Origin: Salpingoeca rosetta | Taxonomy: Eukaryota > Protista > Choanoflagellata | Direction of reading: 5' to 3' | Assembly (NCBI GenBank): GCA_033442325.1 | Contig: JAWQFM010000021.1 | Coordinates: 1,021,692 to 1,085,691 of the forward strand | Length of the DNA stretch: 64,000 nt | Program-made: the position numbers and the translations under genes | In this document: piece by piece, positions 1,286-28,071 of the stretch | How positions within the stretch are numbered: the first letter of the stretch is position 1 | Layout: every line of letters starts with the position of its first letter | The notes under the pieces: generated by a model | Seen by the model: the letters and a program-made list of their open reading frames with translations, nothing else | Told to the model about the DNA's origin: nothing | The model's database searches: none

Positions 1286-11324
<10,039 letters not shown>

Positions 11325-11835
11325 TTTGCGAACATCTTTTGAAGATCAAACATCCACACTCCTTTCCTTGATTTGCGTTCACCAATCTCTTTGTTTGCCC
11401 GTTGGCTTCGGTGTCCGCGTCAGTGTGCTGTGTGCTCTGCAGTATCACGGCTGTATGGCGGTACTGTCGCTCCGTTTACAGAGGCAGAATGGCGCGTGTT
11501 CAGCTACCGTCTTCGCCTCCTCATCTGCGGCCACCCCATCACGGTGAGGTCGCTGCGCTCGCTGCATGCACGACACCAATAAGAAATACGCAACCACGTG
11601 TGTGTCTGTCTGCTTAGTGGGCTGTTGCAAACTTCTGCTGGGCGCTCACATCACGTCCCGCGCGTTGTCGTTTTCGATGTGATATGACCGTTTCTTCGCG
11701 GACCAGGCCACGCTCGACACGACAACAGACCCCACAACACTGCAACTTCCGCCGCTCAACTAGCCAGCCCGTAATGGAACCAACTAAGCGAAGCAGTAAC
11801 AGAACAGAGGGAGGGAGGGAGGGAGAATGTAAGCG

Positions 11836-12287
11836 ATGCAAGAGAACGGTCACGCCGCAACAGCAGGGGACGGCGATGAGGACAGTGGTGGCGGTGGTGG
11901 CAGTGGTGGTGGCGATACGTTCACGTCGCCAATGTCCCCCGAAACCGTTCCCGACGGCGACAACAACGACAACGAGGGTGGCGACAACAGCAATGGGACG
12001 AGTGGTGCTGGGGGTGCGGTGTCGCTGCTGCGGCAACACGGCCACGCTGCGCCGCGCATCTTCGCCACGGCGGTGAGCTGCGATGGGCGCGTTGCCGTCG
12101 GCTGCGCCTTCAGCCTGGAGGTGAACAGGAAGCGGCGGCGGTACTCCATTGCGCTGTACAGCTGCAACGGTGAGCTGCTTGCCGTCACCACGGAGATGCA
12201 GCACATTGCGGCCATGGCGTGGATGGTGGACGGCTCCCACCTCCTCGTCGCCGGACGCGGCGCTGAAGTCCTCTTCCTCGACGCCCT

Positions 12288-12368
<81 letters not shown>

Positions 12369-13152
12369 GTGTGTGTGTGTGTGTATGTGTCTGTGTATGT
12401 GTCTGTGTATGTGTGTGTATGTGTGTGTGTGTGTGCCCGATTCCTACAACTCACCACCTGCTTGCTTATTTTGGCTGGTTGTAGGTTGGAGCGCAAGCAG
12501 CGGCTGTCGATTGGTGCGCCCGTGACGGCGCTCACGATATCCCCAGACGACCGCTTTCTTGTTGTGGGTCTCAAGGATGGACGCATTGTTGTCGCCACGG
12601 TGAGGATGGCCGTGCGTTCTCGTTGTGTGCTTTGGTGACAGCGAGCGTCTGGGTTCGCTTGCCCTCACTCACTCACTCACTCACTCACTCACTCACTCAC
12701 TCATTCATTCATTCATTCATTCATTCACTCACTCGCACCAGCCCGTTGTGCGGGAGGAGCTGAGGGCGACGCGCGCGTCGTCGATTGGGGCGAAACCGGC
12801 GCTGCGGCTCATCTCCCGCACACTCAACACGGCCAAGACAGCAGCGGCAGGGCTGAAGAAGAAGAACAAGCACAAGAAAGGAAGAGGGCAACCAGGGAAG
12901 AGAGGGTCGCAGGAAAGGGAAAGTGGTGTGGAAGCTCTGCAGGAGGAAGAAGAAGAAGGGGTGGAGGAAGAGGAGGAAGAGGACTTAGTGGAGTTTGAAG
13001 AGGATGAGGAGGAGGAGGAAGTGGATGGAGAAGAAGAGGAAGAGGAAGTAAGTGGTGGTGGTGTTCGAGATATCGTGGTGGTGGAATCGAGGGGAAAAGG
13101 AAGCGAAGGTGAAAAGCAGCGTGAGCACCATGTGCCGGCATCAGACGTGTGA
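11836..13152 (+). CDS. WD40 C-terminal region resembling BEACH-domain (neurobeachin/LRBA-type) proteins, plus acidic tail; 5' end unresolved
   Basis: Exons ~11836-12290, 12485-12599 and 12742-13152 join in frame: SIALYSCNGELLA...HIAAMAWMVDGSHLLVAG...PVTALTISPDDRFLVVGLKDGRIVV. No BEACH domain is visible upstream. Confidence 0.6.
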
Positions 13153-13770
13153 GGACAGAGAAGGAGGTAGAGGGAGGTCGATCATTGGTTGTCTGTAATG
13201 GAATGGAAGTAAAACTCAGTCGAGTCACAGCACGGCATGGCAAGCAAGCGAGCGAGCAGGAAAGGGCGATGTTGTGAGTTTGGTTTGCTGGGGAGAAGGG
13301 CAAAATTGCCGAGGTGTGGAAAGTCAGAATTGATGTTGGTGGCTTTGCTTGGTGAAAATTCGCAGGAAAACACACCACAAACTTCCTCCAGCCAAACAAA
13401 ACAAAACAAAGCACACAGTCACCCTAACACCACCAGAACCACAACACCCCAGCCACTGTCCGCACGCACCGAAACGACTCAACACCAACAACGAGGCTTG
13501 ACCTTCCTTCTCACCTTAACCAAAGGCCTGGCACACACACACACACACCACACGCACCGCCTTGGCATTCTCACACCTTTTTGTTTGTGAGTGAAAACAG
13601 CTGTGGCTGAACAGGACAACAAGAACAACAGGACAGAAGCATCACACTCTCGCAGGCTTGCCTTCTGCCTTTGCCTGCAGGCAACAGTACACAGCCACAC
13701 TCTTGCACAAAAAGTTGTGTGAACACACACTCAAGACACCTGAAGGAGCATTCATCGACAACAACAAGTC

Positions 13771-16700
13771 ATGACCTCCCAGGAGCTGGAAACCAAGCTG
13801 GCGGCGATGTTCTGGCTTCACCAGGACGCTAAGGATGAGCTGCGATCCATCGCCAACAACACATGTGGACCAACCTTCAAGTGAGTCCTGCTGAAAATGT
13901 GAAGGGATAGCTGCTTGGTAGCTAGCAAGCGTTTATTTGGACGGGGAGCATGCATACAGTCACGGGTAATATTTACATTCGTGTTTGGTCGCTTGCTCAC
14001 CTCTTGTTCCTGCCGCCCATGCCCCATTTTATCACACCTCAATTTCTTCTCCTTCTTGGACCGCAGAGCGTAAGTCATAGCTGTTGAACTTGAGTGAGCA
14101 TGCATGTGCTGTAGCAACGAAATGTGAAGACGCGATAACGTTGTGGTGATGGTGAACAGTAATGTAATGCGACGCTCATGAGACAGTGTTGCTGTGTCCG
14201 CTCAACTGAATTGACGACTTGCGCAAATGAGGTTATGAGGTTCACAAGAAGAATCAAGTCTCGCGCTCACCGCCTCCTCTTGAACATTTCATTGACGACT
14301 GTGTGCCACACGTTGCATGTGCGCGATCATGGAACACGGTGCCGTGGACACATATGAAACCCGAACGACTCGTGCGCGCGCGTTGGGTGTGGAACGCGAC
14401 ATGACACAACATGACGTTGCGGCTGAATGCGCAACTACAACTTTGTTGCTGCGTGGAACGTGTGACTGAACAGCCCGTACGTTGACTCGCAGCCTGCATG
14501 TTGATGTTTGTATTGTGCTTGTCTGTTGTGTCCGTTGTGCATTGTGTTGTGCTGAGGAAGGTGATGGGAGTGTGTGGTATGTGTTTGTGTTGGTTGGTGT
14601 TGTTGTTGTGGTTGAGCGAGGTTTGTTTGCGCAATTGAGTGCTTGGGTGCATGTGTTGAGGACTCTGTTGGTGACAAGTGTTGTGAGTTTGCGTTGGGTG
14701 ACGGATGCTTGTAGCTGACCCGCTCACATACTCATATGCCTCACGCGCTCACACGAGAGTGTACTGTACTATTGTGGATGATGATGATGATGATGCGCTG
14801 CATACGTTTGGTTTGTGTGCTTTTTGTGTTTTGTTGCTCTTGGGAACCACCATTTGACATGACGTGGCATGGCATGACATGGCATGACGTTGCGGCTGAA
14901 TGCGCAACTACAACTTTGTTGCTGCGTGGAACGTGTGACTGAACAGCCTGTACGTTGACTCGCAGCCTGCACATGCGTTGATGTGTGTGTGTTGGTGTTT
15001 GTGTTGTGATTGTCTGTTGTGTCTGTTGTGATTGTGTGTTGTGCTGAGGAAGGTGATGGGAGTGTGTGTTCGTTTTTGGGATGGTTTGTGTTGTTGTTGT
15101 GGTTGAGCGAGGTTTGTTTGCGCAATTGAGTGCTTGGGTGCATGTGTTGTGGACTCTGTTGGGTGACAAGTGTTGTGAGTTTGCGTTGGGTGACGGATGC
15201 TTGTAGCTGACCCGCTCACACACTCATATACCTCACGCGCTCACACGAGAGTGTACTGTACTATTGTGGATGATGATGATGATGATGATGATGCGCTGCA
15301 TACGTTTGGTTTGTGTTGCTTTTTGTGTTTTGTTGCTGTTGGGAACCACCATTTGACATGACGTGGCATGACATGGCATGGCATGACGTTGCGGCTGAAT
15401 GCGCAACTACAACTTTGTTGCTGCGTGGAACGTGTGACTGAACAGCGCGTACGTTGACTCGCAGCCTGCACATGCGTTGATGTTTGTTGATGTTTGTGTT
15501 GTGATTGTCTGTTGTGTCCGTTGTGCATGGTGTTGTGCTGAGGAAGGTGATGGGAGTGTGTGGTATGTGTTTGTGTTGGTTTGTGTTGTTGTTGTTGTTG
15601 TGGTTGAGCGAGGTTTGTTTGCGCAATTGAGTGCTTGGGTGCATGTGTTGTGGACTCTGTTGGGTGACAAGTGTTGTGAGTTTGCGTTGGGTGACGGAGG
15701 CTTGTAGCTGACCCGCTCACACACTCATATGCCTCACGCGCTCACACGAGAGTGTACTGTACTATTGTGGATGATGATGATGATGATGCGCTGTATATGT
15801 TTGGTTTGTGTTGCTTTTTGTGTTTTGTTGCTGTTGGGAACCACCATTTGACATGACGTGGCATGACATGGCATGGCATGACGTTGCGGCTGAATGCGCA
15901 ACTACAACTTTGTTGCGTGGAACGTGTGACTGAACAGCCCGTACGTTGACTCGCAGCCTACACATGCGTTGATGTTTGTGTTGATGTTTGTGTTGTGATT
16001 GTCTGTTGTGTCCGTTGTGCATGGTGTTGTGCTGAGGAAGGTGATGGGAGTGTGTGGTGCGTGTTTGTGATGGTTGGTGTTGTTGTTGTGGTTGAGCGTG
16101 GTTTGTTTGCGCAATTGAGTGCTTGGGTGCATGTGTTGTGGACTCTGTTGGGTGACAAGTGTTGTGAGTTTGCGTTCGGTGACAGATGCTTACAGCTGAC
16201 CCGCTCACAGACTCATATGCCTCACGCGCTCACACGAGAGTGTACTGTACTATTGTGGATGATGATGATGATGATGCGCTGTATACGTTTGGTTTGTGTT
16301 GCTTTTTTGTGTTTTGTTGCTGTGGGAACCACCATTTGACATGACTTGGCATGGCGACGACATGACATGGCATGGCATGACGTTGCGGCTGAATGCGCAA
16401 CTACAACTTTGTTGCGTGGAACGTGTGACTGAACAGCGCGTACGTTGACCTCGCAGCCTGCACATGCGTTGATGTGTGTGTGTTGGTGTTTGTGTTGTGT
16501 TGTGTCCGTTGTGCATGGTGTTGTGCTGAGGAAGGTGATGGGAGTGTGTGGTATGTGTTTGTGTTGGTTTGTGTTGTTGTTGTTGTTGAGCGTGGTTTGT
16601 TTGCGCAATTGAGTGCTTGGGTGCATGTGTTGTGGACTCTGTTGGGTGTCAAGTGTTGTGAGTTTGCGTTGGGTGACGGATGCTTGTAGCTGACCCGCTC

Positions 16701-19700
16701 ACACACTCATATACTCACGCGCTCACACGAGAGTGTACTGTACTATTGTGGATGATGATGATGATGATGCGCTGCATACGTTTGGTTTGTGTTGCTTTTT
16801 GTGTTTTGTTGCTCTTGGGAACCACCATTTGACATGACATGACATGACACGACATGACGTGGCATGGCATGACGTTGCGACTGAATGCGCAACTACAACT
16901 TTGTTGCTGCGTGGAACGTGTCACTGAACAGCTTGTACGTTGACTCGCAGCCTGCACATGCGTAGATGTGTGTGTGTTGATGTCTGTGTTGTGATTGTCT
17001 GTTGTGTCCGTTGTGCATGGTGTTGTGCTGAGGAAGGTGATGGGAGTGTGTGGTGTGTTTTTGTGATGGTTTGTGTTGTTGTTGTGGTTGAGCGAGGTTT
17101 GTTTGCGCAATTGAGTGCTTGGGTGCATGTGTTGTGGACTCTGTTGGGTGACAAGTGTTGTGAGTTTGCGTTGGGTGACGGATGATTGTAGCTGACCCGC
17201 TCACACACTCATATGCCTCACGCGCTCACACGAGAGTGTACTGTACTATTGTGGATGATGATGATGATGATGATGATGCGCTGCATACGTTTGGTTTGTG
17301 TTGGTTTTTGGGTTTTGTTGCTGGTGGAAACCTCCATTTGAATGACGTGCCATGACATGGATGACATGGACGGTGCGGGCTGAATGCGCGACTACAACTT
17401 TGTTGCTGCGTGGAACGTGTGACTGAACAGCGAGTACGTTGACTCGCAGCCTGCACATGTGTTGATGTGTTTGTGTTGATGTGTGTGTTGTGATTGTCCG
17501 TTGTGATTGTCCGTTGTGCATGGTGTTGTGCTGAGGAAGGTGATGGGAGTGTGTGGTGTGTGTTTGTGATGGTTGGTGTTGTTGTTGTGGTTGAGCTAGT
17601 GCGTTTGTACCTTGCGCAATTGAGTGCTTGGGTGCATGTGTTGTGGACTCTGTTGGGTGTCAAGTGTTGTGAGTTTGCGTTCGGTGACAGATGCTTACAG
17701 CTGACCCGCTCACAGACTCATATGCCTCACGCGCTCACACGAGAGTGTACTGTACTATTGTGGATGATGATGATGATGATGCGCTGTATATGTTTGGTTT
17801 GTGTTGCTTTTTGTGTTTTGTTGCTGTTGGGAACCACCATTTGACATGACGTGGCATGACATGGCATGGCATGACGTTGCGGCTGAATGCGCAACTACAA
17901 CTTTGTTGCGTGGAACGTGTGACTGAACAGCCCGTACGTTGACTCGCAGCCTACACATGCGTTGATGTTTGTGTTGATGTTTGTGTTGTGATTGTCTGTT
18001 GTGTCCGTTGTGCATGGTGTTGTGCTGAGGAAGGTGATGGGAGTGTGTGGTGCGTGTTTGTGATGGTTGGTGTTGTTGTTGTGGTTGAGCGTGGTTTGTT
18101 TGCGCAATTGAGTGCTTGGGTGCATGTGTTGTGGACTCTGTTGGGTGGCAAGTGTTGTGAGTTTGCGTTGGGTGACGGATGATTGTAGCTGACCCGCTCA
18201 CACACTCATATGCCTCACGCGCTCACACGAGAGTGTACTGTACTATTGTGGATGATGATGATGATGATGCGCTGCATACGTTTTGTTTGTGTTGCTTTTT
18301 GTGTTTTGTTGCTCTTGGGAACCACCATTTGACATGACGTGGCATGGCATGACATGGCATGACGTTGCGGCTGAATGCGCAACTACAACTTTGTTGCTGC
18401 GTGGAACGTGTGACTGAAAAGCCTGTACGTTGACTCGCAGCCTGCACATGCGTTGATGTGTGTGTGTTGGTGTTTGTGTTGTGATTGTCTGTTGTGTCTG
18501 TTGTGATTGTGTGTTGTGCTGAGGAAGGTGATGGGAGTGTGTGGTGTGTGTTTGTGATGGTTGGTGTTGTTGTTGTGGTTGAGCGAGGTTTGTTTGCGCA
18601 ATTGAGTGCTTGGGTGCATGTGTTGTGGACTCTGTTGGGTGACAAGTGTTGTGAGTTTGCGTTGGGTGACGGAGGCTTGTAGCTGACCCGCTCACACACT
18701 CATATACTCACGCGCTCACACGAGAGTGTACTGTACTATTGTGGATGATGATGATGATGATGCGCTGCATACGTTTTGTTTGTGTCGCTTTTTGTGTTTT
18801 GTTGCTCTTGGGAACCACCATTTGACATGACATGGCATGGCATGACACGACGTGGCATGGCATGACGTTGCGGCTGAATGCGCAACTACAACTTTGTTGC
18901 GTGGAACGTGTGACTGAACAGTCGGTACGTTGACTCGCAGTCTGCACATGCGTTGATGTTTGTGTTGATGTTTGTGTTGTGATTGTCCGCTGTGTCCGTT
19001 GTGCATGGTGTTGTGCTGAGGAAGGTGATGGGAGTGTGGTGTGTGTTTGTGATGGTTTGTGTTGTTGTTGTGGTTGAGCGAGGTTTGTTTGCGCAATTGA
19101 GTGCTTGGGTGCATGTGTTGTGGACTCTGTTGGTGACAAGTGTTGTGAGTTTGCGTTGAGTGACGGATGCTTGTAGCTGACCCGCTCACACACTCATATG
19201 CCTCACGCGCTCACACGAGAGTGTACTGTACTATTGTGGATGATGATGGTGATGATGCGCTGCATACGTTTGGTTTCACGGTTGTTGTGTGACTTGTATG
19301 TAATATGTCCATCATTGTGCATTGCCTTTTGGCCTTTTGCAGTGACGCGTACATCGACGCCCTTGCTGTTGCTCTCAAGTCCAACCACTGCCTGCAGACC
19401 CTGGAGTACGTTTGCTCTGCCCCGTGCGCTTTCAGGCGCGACATATCGTGTTGCCATTGGCATTCTTCGGGGAATGTCACATCAACCATTTCTTCTCACA
19501 ATCTAATTCCTTGTTCCTCTCTCCTGCAGTTTGAGCCGATTCTGGATGACTGCCGACCGCGCCATCACCATCGCCAATGCGCTCGATCCCCATCGCAACA
19601 TCACCGTCAAGTTGTACGTTCAATGTCCTGTTTGATACGTGCAATGCAATTCGACACCCAACCCCGCGCAGCCGAGCGACTGCGTGACGATGTTGCTGCC

Positions 19701-21896
19701 TGACCCCACACCACTCTTGCCGTTTACCTCGATGCTGTTCTGTTAGTGACGGTGAAAACGAAGATGTGAGACACGCCTTTGACAAGCGCATGAACGAGCG
19801 CCGCCAGCAAAACACGCCGCAACCTTCCCACCCACTACACGCAGCAGTCGCTCCCCCGTCTTCGCCAGGCTCATCGGCCAAGCCTTCGGTGCGTTGTCGC
19901 TCTCCAGTTGAACCCGACCTGTATTGCTCTTCCATTGTGCCCACAAACTCACACGTTTCACGCATTCACCTTCAACATTGTATTCTCATACCAGTCGGAG
20001 ATTGCGCTCAAGAAGAAGCTTCAAGAGAAAAGTAAGCAGCCACCACTGTGCTTCTGTACACAGTTTCTCTGCGTCACCCTGTCTCATGTTTCCACGCCAC
20101 GCCACACGGTGTACCTGACATGACACAGATGCGGAACTCAGTGCGGTTCAACAAGCAAACGCAAAGCTGCAGCAGAACCTCGAGTCAGTCCAGCAGCAGC
20201 TGGCTTCCAAGACGTCCTCCCTCAACGATGCAGGTGAGTGGATGTGATTGCCAACGTCTCCACCGTGTCCTTCCCTCTCTCCGTCCTTTGTCCCGTGCTC
20301 CCCATTTCCTCTCACTACACCTTCCAACTCCCTCATCCGCCCCACCTTCAGATGCGCGCATCGCTGAGCTTGAGCAACAAGTTACTGCGTTGAGTGAAGC
20401 TCTCAGCAACTCTGAAGACATCGTCAAGCACTTTGGTAACGTTGTGCGTGACTGTTGACAGAGGGTGGTTTTTGCGGGGGTGGCTCGCTGCTCTCTTCTT
20501 GGTTTTCTCAGTTGCTTTCCTCCTCACTCCAACCCCATCCCTTCTTCTTGTGTGCCAGAATCGCATTCGCAACAGTTGGCACAGGAGAACGCCTTCTTCA
20601 AGACACGCGTAGAACTCAAGGACAACTGGGAAGAGCAGCTCGGTCAGTGCAGTTCTGTTGGTGGTGTTGATTGCACAACGTCCACTTTAGTACTTGCGTT
20701 GATTGTGCTTGAGATCTGCAACCCACACGGTTCTCGCCTTCATCAATTATCGTCTGCATACCACCTCTTACGTCTGCATACAGAGGGCGTGTTGAACCTG
20801 AACATCCCGTCGTCCCGTTTTGTGGGGAAAGTGCGAGTATTCGACATCAACGGCAAGCCCGTTGGTGGCGCCTTTGGTTCTCTCTTCAAGGCGGAGCTGG
20901 CAGGACAGCCGGTTGCTCTCAAGCAAATGCCCGTCCAGAATCGCCCTCGCCTCTCCGAAATCATCGCATGCGTTGCTGGGTCTGAGGACGTTCCAGACCA
21001 TTTGAAGCAGTTGCGACGCGAGGCGCTCATCCTGCTCTCCCTCCGTCATCCCAACATTGTGCACTTCCTTGGCCTCACCCACGATGAGCAGAGCCAGACG
21101 CTGGCCTTTGTGCTGAGCTGGGCCGAGAACGGGTCCCTCTACGACCTGTTGCACGTGAAGAAGCAGCTGCTTGACGAGCCAACTTGTCTTCGCGTTGCAT
21201 TTGAGGTGGCCTGTGCCATGGCGTTCCTTCACGCCCACAACGTCGTGCACCGCGACCTCAAGTCGCCCAACGTACTGCTGGACGCATCGCTCTCCGCCAA
21301 GGTGACGGACTTTGGCCTGAGCACCTTCAAGTCGGCAGACAAGTCCGTGCTGACACATGGTGGTGGCACACCGCTGTGGGCATCGCCCGAGCAGCTCTTG
21401 GAGGGACAGGAGCTCCGCATGGACACGGACGTGTTTTCCTTTGCTGTTCTGGTGTGGGAGCTGTTCCTCAACATCAAGCCCTGGTACCATGGCAAGTACG
21501 CTGCGCTGGGTGGCGCGAACATCTCCACAATTGCCAGAGCGTATGAGAAGGGCAGATACCTCCCGCTTGACGTTGAGGTTGATGGTCGCAGGCTGAGCGA
21601 TGCGGTGCAGCAGGTGCTTGGTCAGTGCTTTGACGTCAGCGGCAACCGACCATCGTTTGTTCAGCTGCAAGGCACGCTGGGTGGGCAGTACACAGCCGCC
21701 AAAGAACAGCACGCAGTCGATATGGAACAGCAACACGAGCAGCTGCACGGTCCTGCCAGTGCCGCGTGGAAGTGGCAGCCCAACGTCCTCGAACCACTGC
21801 AGTCGTTCATGGTGACTCATCCAACCCGCGCGTCAGTGCGCATTGCTGCGGTTGGCGCTGCCCACGACAAGGCCATCGCCATCGCCAATCAGGTGA

Positions 21897-21956
<60 letters not shown>

Positions 21957-22544
21957 ATTCGTGTGAAGCAATGGGTTGCTGCGACATGTTAATCACGCCC
22001 CTTCATCCCATCCCTTCATCACTCCCTTTCACACTCACCGGTCACCCACTCTTCTCTTGTCTCCCACCCCACAACCACACGACAGATGATCACGGAAGCT
22101 GGCGGCCGCTCAAGTGATGAAGCAAGACATGGTTTTGAAGGTCATACGCTGCGCTGGGTGGCGCGAACATCTCCACAATTGCCAGAGCGTATGAGAAGGG
22201 CAGATACCTCCCGCTTGACGTTGAGGTTGATGGTCGCAGGCTGAGCGATGCGGTGCAGCAGGTGCTTGGTCAGTGCTTTGACGTCAGCGGCAACCGACCA
22301 TCGTTTGTTCAGCTGCAAGGCACGCTGGGTGGGCAGTACACAGCCGCCAAAGAACAGCACGCAGTCGATATGGAACAGCAACACGAGCAGCTGCACGGTC
22401 CTGCCAGTGCCGCGTGGAAGTGGCAGCCCAACGTCCTCGAACCACTGCAGTCGTTCATGGTGACTCATCCAACCCGCGCGTCAGTGCGCATTGCTGCGGT
22501 TGGCGCTGCCCACGACAAGGCCATCGCCATCGCCAATCAGGTGA

Positions 22545-22604
<60 letters not shown>

Positions 22605-23534
22605 ATTCGTGTGAAGCAATGGGTTGCTGCGACATGTTAATCACGCCCCTTCATCCCATCCCTTCATCACTCCCTTTCACACTCACCGGTCACCCACTCT
22701 TCTCTTGTCTCCCACCCCACAACCACACGACAGATGATCACGGAAGCTGGCGGCCGCTCAAGTGATGAAGCAACAGCAGCTCCTCTGCAGCCCTTTGGCA
22801 AGACCGTTGCTGGTGTCGCTGTTGTGCAGTGCAGCCAGAAGAATGCTGCCTTCAACGGCGCCGTGCACCGCAACCAGACCCGTTATCGTGGTCACATGAG
22901 CAGCGCCAACCACCCGTTCCATCCCAAGTACCAGATGGGTCAGGCAACGGGTGCGCCCATCAACGCCGAGGAGGCTGCTGTCCTTGCTCGCGCCACCCTC
23001 CACCCTGCTGGCGCTTCATCGTACAAGGTGCTGGACCCGGCCATGATGCAGCCTGATGTGCATCTTCGCCTGCAGCGCGTGTTCCATGGCGTGCCGTCGT
23101 TTGCTGTGGCCATGAGCATCCTGGGCGGCGATTTCGCACAGCTGCAGAAGACTGACAATGGCTGGTACGGTGCTGGCTTCTACTTTACGCACGACCTCGA
23201 CTATGCTCTCGAGTACACGAAGAAGTGTAAGGATGTGCCGCCTGAGCTGCAGCACCTGAATTTGCCTGCAGGCAAGCAGTTCCGGGTGGTCCTGGTGTGT
23301 GACGTGCAGTATGGCAACCCATACCCAGTGCCGGACGCTGTCACCTTTAACGGCAAGCCGCTCGTTGGCGGACACGACGCCCATGTTGCCGTCGTCGATT
23401 TCAGCACCGGCAGCAAGGCTGACGCATTCCCCCTCGCACCCACAGAATGGGCCAGCAAGCGCACCGCCGCCGAGATTGTGATCAACGACCCGTCCTGTGT
23501 CCTCGTGCGCGGCATCCTCGTGTTTGAGGCCTGA
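13771..23534 (+). CDS. LRR - coiled coil - TKL Ser/Thr kinase - PARP-like ADP-ribosyltransferase protein (~872 aa without microexons)
   Basis: Phase-consistent GT-AG exons 13771-13880, 19343-19405, 19530-19613, 19747-19888, 19995-20031, 20129-20233, 20352-20435, 20559-20642, 20784-21892 and 22734-23534. RI-like LRRs (ALAVALKSNHCLQTLDL), heptad region, kinase motifs VALK, HRDLKSPN, DFG and GTPLWASPE, and ART motifs VFHG, GWYGAGFYF, ALEY, LVCDVQYGNPY and AEIVI. Confidence 0.85.
14067..14069 (+). other. Candidate 3-nt microexon (AGC) of the LRR-kinase-ART gene
   Basis: Pyrimidine tract ttcttctccttctt, then CGCAG|AGC|GTAAGT with a perfect donor. Inclusion preserves the frame. Confidence 0.6.
14398..19276 (+). 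repeat. ~495-bp tandem array, ~10 units, each containing a candidate 3-nt microexon AG|NNN|GTACGT
   Basis: Triplets at 14474 CCC, 14947 CCT, 15446 CGC, 15938 CCC, 16437 CGC, 16932 CTT, 17431 CGA, 17931 CCC, 18422 CCT and 18922 TCG (spacing 473-500). Units also carry (GAT)n and (CATGR)n microsatellites. Confidence 0.93.
21497..22773 (+). repeat. Direct 629-bp duplication (21497-22125 = 22145-22773) with a 19-bp filler
   Basis: The copies appear identical, including a (GT)24 tract; offset is 648. The filler GACATGGTTTTGAAGGTCA lies at 22126-22144. Confidence 0.92.
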
Positions 23535-24334
23535 ACGCCTGAACGCAACGGCCCGCCACCCGTCCGCCAACAAGGTTGTTGGTGTCGTTTCCTCGTTGGT
23601 TCGGTGTTACATCTAGGCGTCTCGTCTCGTCATCCCCCTCCTTCACACTCTCAGCTCACGCTTGCCATTGCTGTTTCATGGCAGATTGTTGCTTTGTTGT
23701 TTTGTCGCTTCCTTGTTCCATGGTACTGGATAGTCTTCTGCCATTCTGCGTTCGTTGACGGTACAACGTTTTTGCAAGCTTCCATTCCTTCGTTCCTTTC
23801 GTTGTGCATGCACGAGCACATCGGCTCTTGTTGTATTTCTTTGTTCTTGCGAGGAAACACGGCAAATACTCACTCTTTCCTCTGCAATCCGCCATTTTAC
23901 GGTGCTATCAACTTTCCTCTGCAGTGCGTGTAGATTCTTCATCATCCCGCCTGTTCGCCTTTGTCGGCCCTTTCACGTGTTGGCACGTTACAGCTGGCTT
24001 TGGTTCACCGTTTCCTCCCAAGCACACTTGTTTCTGTTTGGTGGTCCAGTGGTCCTTCCCGTTCCCCCTCTACTTTTCGTCCTTCCCGCTTTTCGTTCCC
24101 CCACCACCTGCCCGTTGTTTTGCCCTTCCATACTGAATGTCGCCTTGCTGCCGTCGCTTGTCCTCCCCCACAGCCTTCATTCACCTTTCTCCTACCCGCC
24201 CGTTACGCTCCGTTCCATCTCTGGTCATACAATACAGCGTTCCCCGAAACACAGAGGGCGAAGGCAGCATGACTAGCTTGCGGAATTTTTGCTGAAGTTA
24301 TTCGTCACTTTTCCATAAGCACACAACCTCGAAG

Positions 24335-24362
24335 ATGATGCACCGACTGCTGGCAAGGGTGT

Positions 24363-24403
<41 letters not shown>

Positions 24404-25202
24404 TGTGTGTGTGTCTGTGTGTGTGTCTGTGTGTATGTGTGTGTGTGTCTGTGTGTCTGTGTGTCTGTGTGTGTCTGTGTCTGTGTGTGTGTGTGTGTGT
24501 GTATGTCTGTGTGTGTAAGAAGGCACCACCAGACATTGCTGCTTGTCATTGTGGTTCATTTGTCGCTGTTTCTTTATGTTCCGCTTTATGTGCAGGCGAT
24601 GCGCGCACGCGCCGCACCTCTTCGTCAAGGGGCGCGCAATGCATCTCACGGTGGCGCAGATGCACACAAGTACTCCGAGAGTGTCACGCCCATTGAGCCA
24701 AGCCCAATGTACGTTGGTAGTGTCGAATTAACCGTTGTTGTGATTGTTTGAGCGTTACTTCGCCCTCGTCCTTGTTTCCCTCCTTGCTTGCGTCTTTGTG
24801 CTGAGCTGTTCATTCGTCAACCTTCTCCCACTTAAAACGGAATGATGTTGCTTGTGGTTCTCGCGCATCGTTAACTCTGCTGCCACCCTTGCTGTTCCTG
24901 TGCGCTTGACGCAGGTACTCGTATGCGGCCACGGGCATGGGCGCAGTGATGTGGTTCTGGATTCTGTGGAGGGCAAAGCACGACCTTCCCCACCTCTTGG
25001 TACGCATGAGCTTGCTGCTGTCACCGATTACACCTGTGCTTGTCACAGTTTGCACATGTTTTGCACACACACACATGTGTTTGTTGTTCATGGACTGGCT
25101 TGTATTGACTCTTGACCCCACCCCACCTCCTCTCGCCATATTCAGGGCTTTGAGCATCCTTGGGACCACCTGCACGAGCACGGTGACGAGGAGCACCACT
25201 AA
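24335..25202 (+). CDS. NDUFB2: NADH:ubiquinone oxidoreductase subunit NDUFB2 (AGGG)-like
   Basis: Exons 24335-24358, 24596-24708, 24915-24999 and 25146-25202 give an Arg-rich presequence followed by ATGMGAVMWFWILWRAKHDLPHLLGFEHPWDH, the family signature. Confidence 0.85.
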
Positions 25203-25510
25203 GCGTACCACTACCATCGACAACCAACAGCCAACCAACCATCTGTCGTGAACTGTTGTCTGTGCTCCTGTCTAGTTCATGTGTCAATGTGTGCTTGTGT
25301 AAGTGTTCTTCACCCTTCTTTCTTTCTCCCCACAACTCCCGCTTTGGGTCCTCTCTGCGTGCTGCCGTGTCGTGTGTCATGTGTTGATGGATAACTGTGG
25401 TGTACTGGTTTGCTGTGTGGACCACAAGTGAATGAACAGCGTGTTTGTGATGAGACGACTGCAACATATGGGGAAGAGGAGAACTGTGTTGGAGGTGGCG
25501 GCCGCCTTGT

Positions 25511-28071
<2,561 letters not shown>

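Follow-up and report, generated by a model that had tools for sequence, protein, structure and literature searches.

A 64,000-nt stretch of the genome of the choanoflagellate Salpingoeca rosetta (GenBank assembly GCA_033442325.1, contig JAWQFM010000021.1, positions 1,021,692 to 1,085,691), hereafter the window, carries on its plus strand between positions 13771 and 23534 a gene that we interpret as a fusion of a protein kinase with a divergent poly(ADP-ribose) polymerase (PARP)-type enzyme. According to this interpretation, to which we assign a probability of roughly 80%, ten exons encode one cytosolic chain that comprises a remnant of leucine-rich repeats (LRRs), a coiled coil, a tyrosine kinase-like (TKL) kinase and a PARP-type ADP-ribosyltransferase (ART) domain. 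The predicted order along the chain is a short N-terminal helix, about two degenerate LRRs of the ribonuclease inhibitor (RI) type, a Pro/Ser linker, a coiled coil about 110 residues long, the kinase, a second linker and the ART. The interval corresponds to the public S. rosetta gene XP_004991757.1 (EGD75836.1, UniProt F2UGT6), whose 839-aa product bears the name "TKL protein kinase"; exons 2-10 of our model match this product residue for residue. We refer to this protein as P0158, using working identifiers for proteins (P), loci (L) and contigs (C); the window itself is C21:1021692-1085691 of a 55.4-Mb, 68-contig genome. Both the gene and its paralogues are already public, yet carry nothing but kinase names.

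The last exon is predicted to adopt the PARP/ARTD-type ART fold with an apparently intact His-Tyr-Glu (H-Y-E) triad. A preliminary description of this stretch, prepared from the letters alone, had proposed such a domain and had made its proposal depend on the fold of this exon, and the modelled fold bears it out. With a 72-sequence alignment, AlphaFold2 modelled the exon at a predicted local distance difference test score (pLDDT) of 95.2 and a predicted template modelling score (pTM) of 0.92 (pLDDT 43 with 8 sequences). Among the Foldseek matches listed, all are PARP catalytic domains, at least 305 of them at E <= 0.001 (best E 1e-8), with a probability of 1.00 to PARP3, PARP4, PARP2, PARP1 and tankyrase. 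Superposition with VIA-align placed the model nearest to PARP12 (2pqf; Z 15.8, root-mean-square deviation [rmsd] 2.6 A, 156/181 residues), followed by tankyrase 1/2, PARP10, PARP14 and PARP15 at Z 14.6-15.1; over the PARP matches the rmsd ranges from 2.4 to 3.8 with 152-170 residues aligned. A word search returned eight homologues, headed by an S. rosetta protein that UniRef labels 'PARP catalytic domain-containing protein', and a profile search covering 1.84 billion representatives retrieved 504 proteins at E <= 0.001, 23 of them at E <= 1e-30. A phmmer search of the exon against the PDB yielded only noise, such as TPR designs, while an eight-sequence profile gave a marginal match to PARP4 (E 0.06) aligned at GxGxYF.

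The putative catalytic residues reside in three motifs of this exon, FHG (23082-23090), GWYGAGFYF (23160-23186) and AEIVI (23469-23483), with the codons for H118, Y150 and E247 at 23085, 23181 and 23472, respectively. The triad occupies the motifs that it occupies in PARP/ARTD enzymes, here xFHG, GxGxYF and xEIVI, whose counterparts in PARP1 are presumably HGS, YFA and NEYIV. Across 72 homologues, H118 is kept in 62, Y150 in all 72 and E247 in 70. The second tyrosine is retained (Y161), and a glycine follows the histidine (H118-G119). The domain nonetheless differs from canonical PARPs, being 12-19% identical to any solved member and carrying on its N-terminal side a conserved extension of about 105 residues, together with a family motif, GHDAHVAVV. 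Among five close paralogues, both enzymatic domains are under purifying selection, the ratio of nonsynonymous to synonymous substitution (dN/dS) being 0.24-0.33 for the ART and 0.08-0.25 for the kinase.

The kinase, encoded by exon 9, is matched by Pfam at E 4.9e-39 (PF07714) and E 9e-39 (PF00069). Its closest solved relatives in the PDB are CTR1 (E 4e-32), RAF1, TNNI3K and BRAF, over a range of about 1e-32 to 1e-23. The glycine-rich segment GGAFGS (20864), VALK (20912-20923), HRDLKSPN (21248-21271), DFG (21308-21316) and ASPE (21380) are all present, as is the glutamate of helix C. The domain is a TKL Ser/Thr kinase resembling Raf, MLK and CTR1 in which no catalytic motif is missing, and it looks active, in agreement with the preliminary description, whose named motifs in kinase and last exon alike (VALK, HRDLKSPN, DFG, FHG, GWYGAGFYF and AEIVI) were each found where it had placed them. 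A separate observation concerns the paralogous S. rosetta protein XP_004989349.1 (P0008; L009, C23:782500-790500), encoded on another contig of the genome at 96-99% identity. Relative to the window kinase, P0008 lacks the ten residues VTDFGLSTFK, DFG included, and a genome search splits its match at this point into residues 231-408 and 402-597. The gap reflects either an error in the gene model or a dead-kinase paralogue.

Kinase and ART lie in one chain in this family, in line with the single chain that the preliminary description had proposed for this gene. The S. rosetta RefSeq proteins P0009, P0011, P0012, P0013 and P0015 each combine LRR_6 repeats, a kinase and an ART-like domain; complete de novo transcriptome open reading frames (ORFs) of two other choanoflagellates join ankyrin repeats, kinase and ART in Microstomoeca roanoka (P0017, P0026) and kinase and ART in Didymoeca costata (P0045). 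On a metagenome contig (L001; ENA ERZ27287950 k119_1290454), the kinase end and the ART share one intronless open frame. On the same contig, at about 1060-1080, a one-base frame change occurs inside the kinase, placing its earlier part in another frame; this could be a mistake of assembly or a genuine break. Searching all six frames of the S. rosetta genome with P0008 recovered at least 18 same-strand pairs of a kinase followed by an ART, and at least 5 further ART matches, both counts being lower bounds.

The modules that precede the ART vary among relatives. They include ankyrin repeats, TPR, WD40 plus kinase (Apiculatamorpha), MORN plus kinase and thioredoxin plus kinase; a Roco COR domain is joined to the ART in Didymoeca, a Roc-COR module precedes it in P0069 and P0111, and in another architecture the order is kinase, ART and then LRR_6. 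One transcriptome protein from Paulinella chromatophora (P0035 / P0157, 1267 aa) unites a SidE-type phosphodiesterase (PF12252, E 1e-29) with a kinase and an above-threshold PARP domain; SidE phosphodiesterases are otherwise known from Legionella effectors. In the older S. rosetta assembly, a 578-aa 'serine/threonine protein kinase' (P0162) and a 367-aa 'PARP catalytic domain-containing protein' (P0001, PTSG_08612) lie on the same 1,067,092-bp scaffold, and these may be one kinase-ART gene split by annotation.

Several observations weigh against the proposed architecture. The Pfam PARP profile (PF00644) scores the last exon at 18.3 bits (E 0.0017), below the gathering cut-off of 26.7, with exon residues 114-198 aligned on profile positions 50-123. 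In favour of the ART, this profile also matches seven of eight close homologues weakly. Close homologues score 17.8-20.5 bits, and the more distant fusion proteins P0035 and P0050 exceed the threshold at 34 and 32 bits. It is because the ART domain falls below this cut-off that kinase-ART fusions have been hidden under the name "TKL protein kinase". Within the ART, A158 (alanine in 61/72 homologues) occupies the position of a serine in PARP4, three residues before the second tyrosine. This position corresponds to Ser904 of PARP1, which, with Gly863, we take to be a nicotinamide-anchoring residue, and NAD+ binding may therefore differ. At the N terminus, exons 1-4 give no Pfam match even at E <= 10, and hence no LRR_6 array is detected, while the coiled coil of about 110 residues is predicted from weak Pfam matches and a reading of the sequence. 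Finally, an acceptor identical to the one that opens the ART exon lies nearer to the kinase, at 22086, and its use would produce a 193-nt intron and a stop before the ART.

This nearer acceptor results from a tandem duplication of 629 bp that spans the junction of kinase and ART and is perfect, with zero divergence between the copies (Table 1). The public model treats 21893-22733 as a single 841-nt intron joining 21892 to 22734, and because the nearer, identical acceptor leads to a stop, a single chain at this locus depends on the use of that intron. The fusion might accordingly be broken here, with splicing to 22086 yielding either the kinase alone, followed by 52 out-of-frame residues, or a target of nonsense-mediated decay, and leaving the ART exon silent. 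We regard this as a real possibility, albeit one that we hold only tentatively. A 193-nt intron is nearer than one of 841 nt to the norm for this gene (97-141 nt, setting aside intron 1 and the kinase/ART intron), the frame entered at the proximal acceptor does terminate, and the duplication is present in both the newer and the older public assembly. Moreover, an inverted paralogue about 70 kb away and 92% identical (L008, C21:968500-978499; public protein P0167) carries an independent, likewise perfect duplication to equivalent effect. That duplication measures 587 bp with a 23-nt filler and a period of 610 bp (reverse-complement coordinates 6976-8172); its breakpoints differ from those of the 629-bp event, yet it spans the same (TG)25 intron and likewise puts a decoy acceptor before the ART exon. 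Against a broken fusion stand the junction in the public annotation, the chance that the two assemblies are not independent and share an artefact, and an ART exon that is intact and evolves at a dN/dS of 0.32 relative to a paralogue. This last point has little weight because a duplication with zero divergence must be very young.

The duplications themselves may have arisen very recently at a (TG)n hot spot, or the two assemblies may have an artefact in common. An artefact confined to the new assembly was rejected, since window positions 16028-26534 are base-for-base the same as the older assembly (GCA_000188695.1, GL832973.1:1023846-1048352). The fillers of both duplications are unique in the genome, and an origin by copying from elsewhere in it was therefore rejected. 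No such tandem duplication is found in the C23 paralogues. A bolder proposal, which we consider very improbable, is that the decoy acceptors in both C21 paralogues represent recurrent uncoupling of the ART to give kinase-only isoforms, perhaps driven by the (TG)25 intron, within a choanoflagellate conflict or immune family whose phosphorylation and ADP-ribosylation outputs are coupled.

The preliminary description had gone further than a fusion enzyme, reading the protein as a sensor of innate immunity whose LRR recognition and coiled-coil oligomerisation would activate both the kinase and an effector that consumes NAD+, much as NLR proteins work. We find this unlikely. It would be in keeping with the lineage-specific expansion of kinase-ART pairs, the exchange of N-terminal modules (LRR_6, ankyrin, TPR, WD40, MORN, thioredoxin, Roc-COR) among members and the recent segmental and tandem duplications. 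However, the repeat sensor it invokes is reduced in this gene to about two degenerate LRRs, with LRR_6 arrays found only in distant paralogues, and the NLR-type logic is countered by the lack of a NACHT, NB-ARC or other STAND NTPase in this gene and in the 28 family members scanned with Pfam. Selection is purifying, not diversifying, on the domains tested, and literature searches gave no paper on such kinase-ART proteins. Swapped N-terminal modules and lineage-specific expansion fit a modular signalling or conflict family, and they are the sole basis for an immune or NAD+-consuming role, an extension that is unsupported.

More doubtful still is a role for the ART as a pseudoenzyme or regulatory module that binds NAD+ or ADP-ribose, or docks on the kinase, without transfer: the sub-threshold Pfam score, A158 and the family-specific extension with its GHDAHVAVV motif might suit such a role, whereas the conservation of H, Y and E is unexpected for a dead site, and the tight match to the PARP fold and purifying selection also argue against it. 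The divergent PARP-type ART behind a TKL kinase is real and probably active, and the fusion at the XP_004991757.1 locus may be interrupted.

The gene model on which this interpretation of a single kinase-ART chain rests has ten exons (Table 1), which were searched individually. All introns are GT-AG with consistent phases and no in-frame stop, and the 2619 nt of coding sequence specify 872 codons plus a stop. The boundaries of one intron were checked against P0158. The start codon at 13771, the stop ending at 23534 and the 266-aa last exon agree with the preliminary description, so that the ends of its span stand; about half of that span is an intronic, non-coding minisatellite, and the description had missed both an intron at 20643-20783 within its 'kinase exon' and the tandem duplication.

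Table 1. Exons, introns and repeats of the kinase-ART gene, in window coordinates
Feature	Position	Strand	Description
Exon 1	13771..13880	+	ATG, 36 codons and 2 nt (MTSQELETKL...CGPTF); donor CAA/GTGAGT, phase 2; unannotated in the public record
Intron 1	13881..19342	+	5462 nt; placed by splice sites and phases; holds the minisatellite
Minisatellite	14499..19276	+	494 bp x 9.6 copies, 92% matches; within intron 1
Exon 2	19343..19405	+	helical half of a degenerate RI-like LRR (DAYIDALAVALKSNHCLQTL); no Pfam match
Exon 3	19530..19613	+	84 nt, one 28-residue LRR-like unit (LSRFWMTADRAITIANALDPHRNITVK); no Pfam match
Exon 4	19747..19888	+	end of repeat region and Pro/Ser-rich linker; 100% to P0158 residues 54-100
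Exon 5	19995..20031	+	predicted coiled coil begins (SEIALKKKLQEK)
Exon 6	20129..20233	+	predicted coiled coil; weak Pfam matches to coiled-coil families
Exon 7	20352..20435	+	predicted coiled coil
Exon 8	20559..20642	+	predicted coiled coil ends; donor TCG/GTCAGT; sole boundary pair reproducing P0158
Exon 9	20784..21892	+	TKL kinase and linker of ~75 residues; donor CAG/GTGAGA
Duplication copy 1	21497..22125	+	3' part of kinase exon, (TG)25 intron, first 40 nt of ART exon
Proximal-acceptor frame	22086..22244	+	stop at 22242-22244; product without ART domain
Filler	22126..22144	+	19 nt at duplication junction; unique in genome
Duplication copy 2	22145..22773	+	its last 40 nt belong to the true ART exon
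Exon 10	22734..23534	+	family-specific extension of ~105 residues, predicted PARP-type ART core and stop

Exon 1 lies in a gap between called genes of the public annotation (13152-19028). We regard it as a real exon because its donor phase fits exon 2, because the ORF is conserved, with the same donor phase, upstream of the paralogous loci L009 (61% aa) and L010 (54% aa), and because it resembles the N-termini of the more distant paralogues P0009 and P0015. The intron DNA around the ORF in L009 and L010 does not align, and the phase-2 donor joins exon 2 directly, with no need of a bridging microexon. The public model of P0158 instead starts with MGVC at an ATG (19028) inside the minisatellite, and that of the paralogue P0167 starts MRNYNFVAAWNV, elsewhere in the same repeat. 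These public starts look arbitrary, and both omit the conserved first exon.

The inverted paralogue L008 shares the minisatellite of intron 1, and L009 lacks the array. Each unit contains the sequence 'gactgaacag/NNN/gtacgt', in which only the middle three bases vary (CCC, CCT, CGC, CTT, CGA, TCG). An acceptor that directly adjoins a donor recalls recursive splice sites and might aid the removal of a 5.5-kb intron in a genome where introns measure about 120 nt. The three-nucleotide segments preserve the frame, so frame alone cannot rule them out as exons; we did not count them as such, given that they lack a pyrimidine tract, that one motif has been copied along with the repeat and that the array is missing from L009. 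Outside the array, at 14044-14073, a strong pyrimidine tract and acceptor are followed by 3 nt and a consensus donor (ttcttctccttcttggaccgcag/AGC/gtaagt), constituting a candidate recursive splice site or 3-nt exon whose inclusion would add one residue and leave the frame unchanged.

In the repeat region, exons 2 and 3 can be read as helical halves of RI-type repeats (..IDALAVALKSNHCLQTL.., ..ADRAITIANALDPHRNITVK..), exon 3 comprising exactly 28 codons. Both resemble true LRR segments of paralogues at E 1-10, and exon 3 matches P0008, and P0008 alone at that level, with E 5.9e-08. The subfamily consisting of P0008, P0158 and P0167 appears from these comparisons to keep at most two degenerate LRR repeats, and the more distant paralogues P0009, P0011, P0013, P0015 and P0091 pass the Pfam LRR_6 threshold. 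The weak Pfam matches that suggest a coiled coil are to GIT_CC, ACBP4_C and DUF4763 for exon 6, and to ATG16, DMPK_coil and the crescentin rod for P0008.

In the PARP/ARTD family, none of the 17 human members places its ART behind a protein kinase, the arrangement seen in the S. rosetta protein. The preliminary description had likewise held that the protein fits no standard animal PARP architecture, and a survey of eukaryotic PARPs that lists choanoflagellate members includes no kinase fusion among its architectures (Perina et al., 2014; PMC4245714). The kinase shares HRDLKSPN, DFG and VALK with the MAP3K-like Raf/MLK/CTR1 kinases, differing in a 30-residue insert between VALK and helix C; the protein lacks their Ras-binding, SH3 or CRIB modules and has a C-terminal ART as its output. 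MLKs carry a leucine zipper beside the kinase, and the predicted coiled coil adjoins the kinase in a similar manner. LRRK/Roco proteins and LRR-kinases also place a repeat module and a TKL kinase in one cytosolic chain, whereas the S. rosetta gene has only about two LRRs and neither a Roc GTPase nor a COR domain. LRRs and a PARP-like ART fold likewise occur together in the eukaryotic LRRC9 family, where the ART-like domain is central, has no conserved H-Y-E and is predicted to be a pseudoenzyme (Wyzewski et al., 2021; PMC7955679); the S. rosetta protein, by contrast, has its ART at the C terminus, behind a kinase and with H-Y-E retained. With NLR/STAND sensors the protein loosely shares the modular logic of a repeat module, an oligomerisation element and an effector, as well as lineage-specific expansion. 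Membership in that group was rejected, as the protein has no NACHT/NB-ARC NTPase and its vestigial LRRs lie at the N terminus.

In the public annotation, the gene is preceded by the final part of a 3252-aa protein and by one of 326 aa that matches WD40 weakly (9028-13152), and is followed by a 92-aa NADH_B2 protein and then a minus-strand TPR protein (24335-25202). A functional link between these flanking genes and the kinase-ART gene is not evident.

The coiled coil would be expected to dimerise the protein and thereby to activate the kinase through trans-phosphorylation, a mechanism familiar from MLK and RAF kinases. The ART would use NAD+ to ADP-ribosylate itself, the kinase or substrates shared with the kinase, and the short N-terminal repeat module may select a partner.

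In animals, stress and immune signalling depends centrally on PARP-type enzymes and likewise on TKL kinases, but to our knowledge no studied protein joins the two in one chain. Literature searches, which included the accession numbers, found no description of choanoflagellate kinase-PARP fusions. For the public record, the ART domain and the missing first exon should be added to the annotation, and the start codons inside the minisatellite are doubtful. The about twenty kinase-PARP fusion genes of S. rosetta, with apparently intact H-Y-E, would enlarge the known PARP repertoire of choanoflagellates. In S. rosetta, which is closely related to animals and amenable to genetics, these fusions may offer a natural system for asking how phosphorylation and ADP-ribosylation are coupled.

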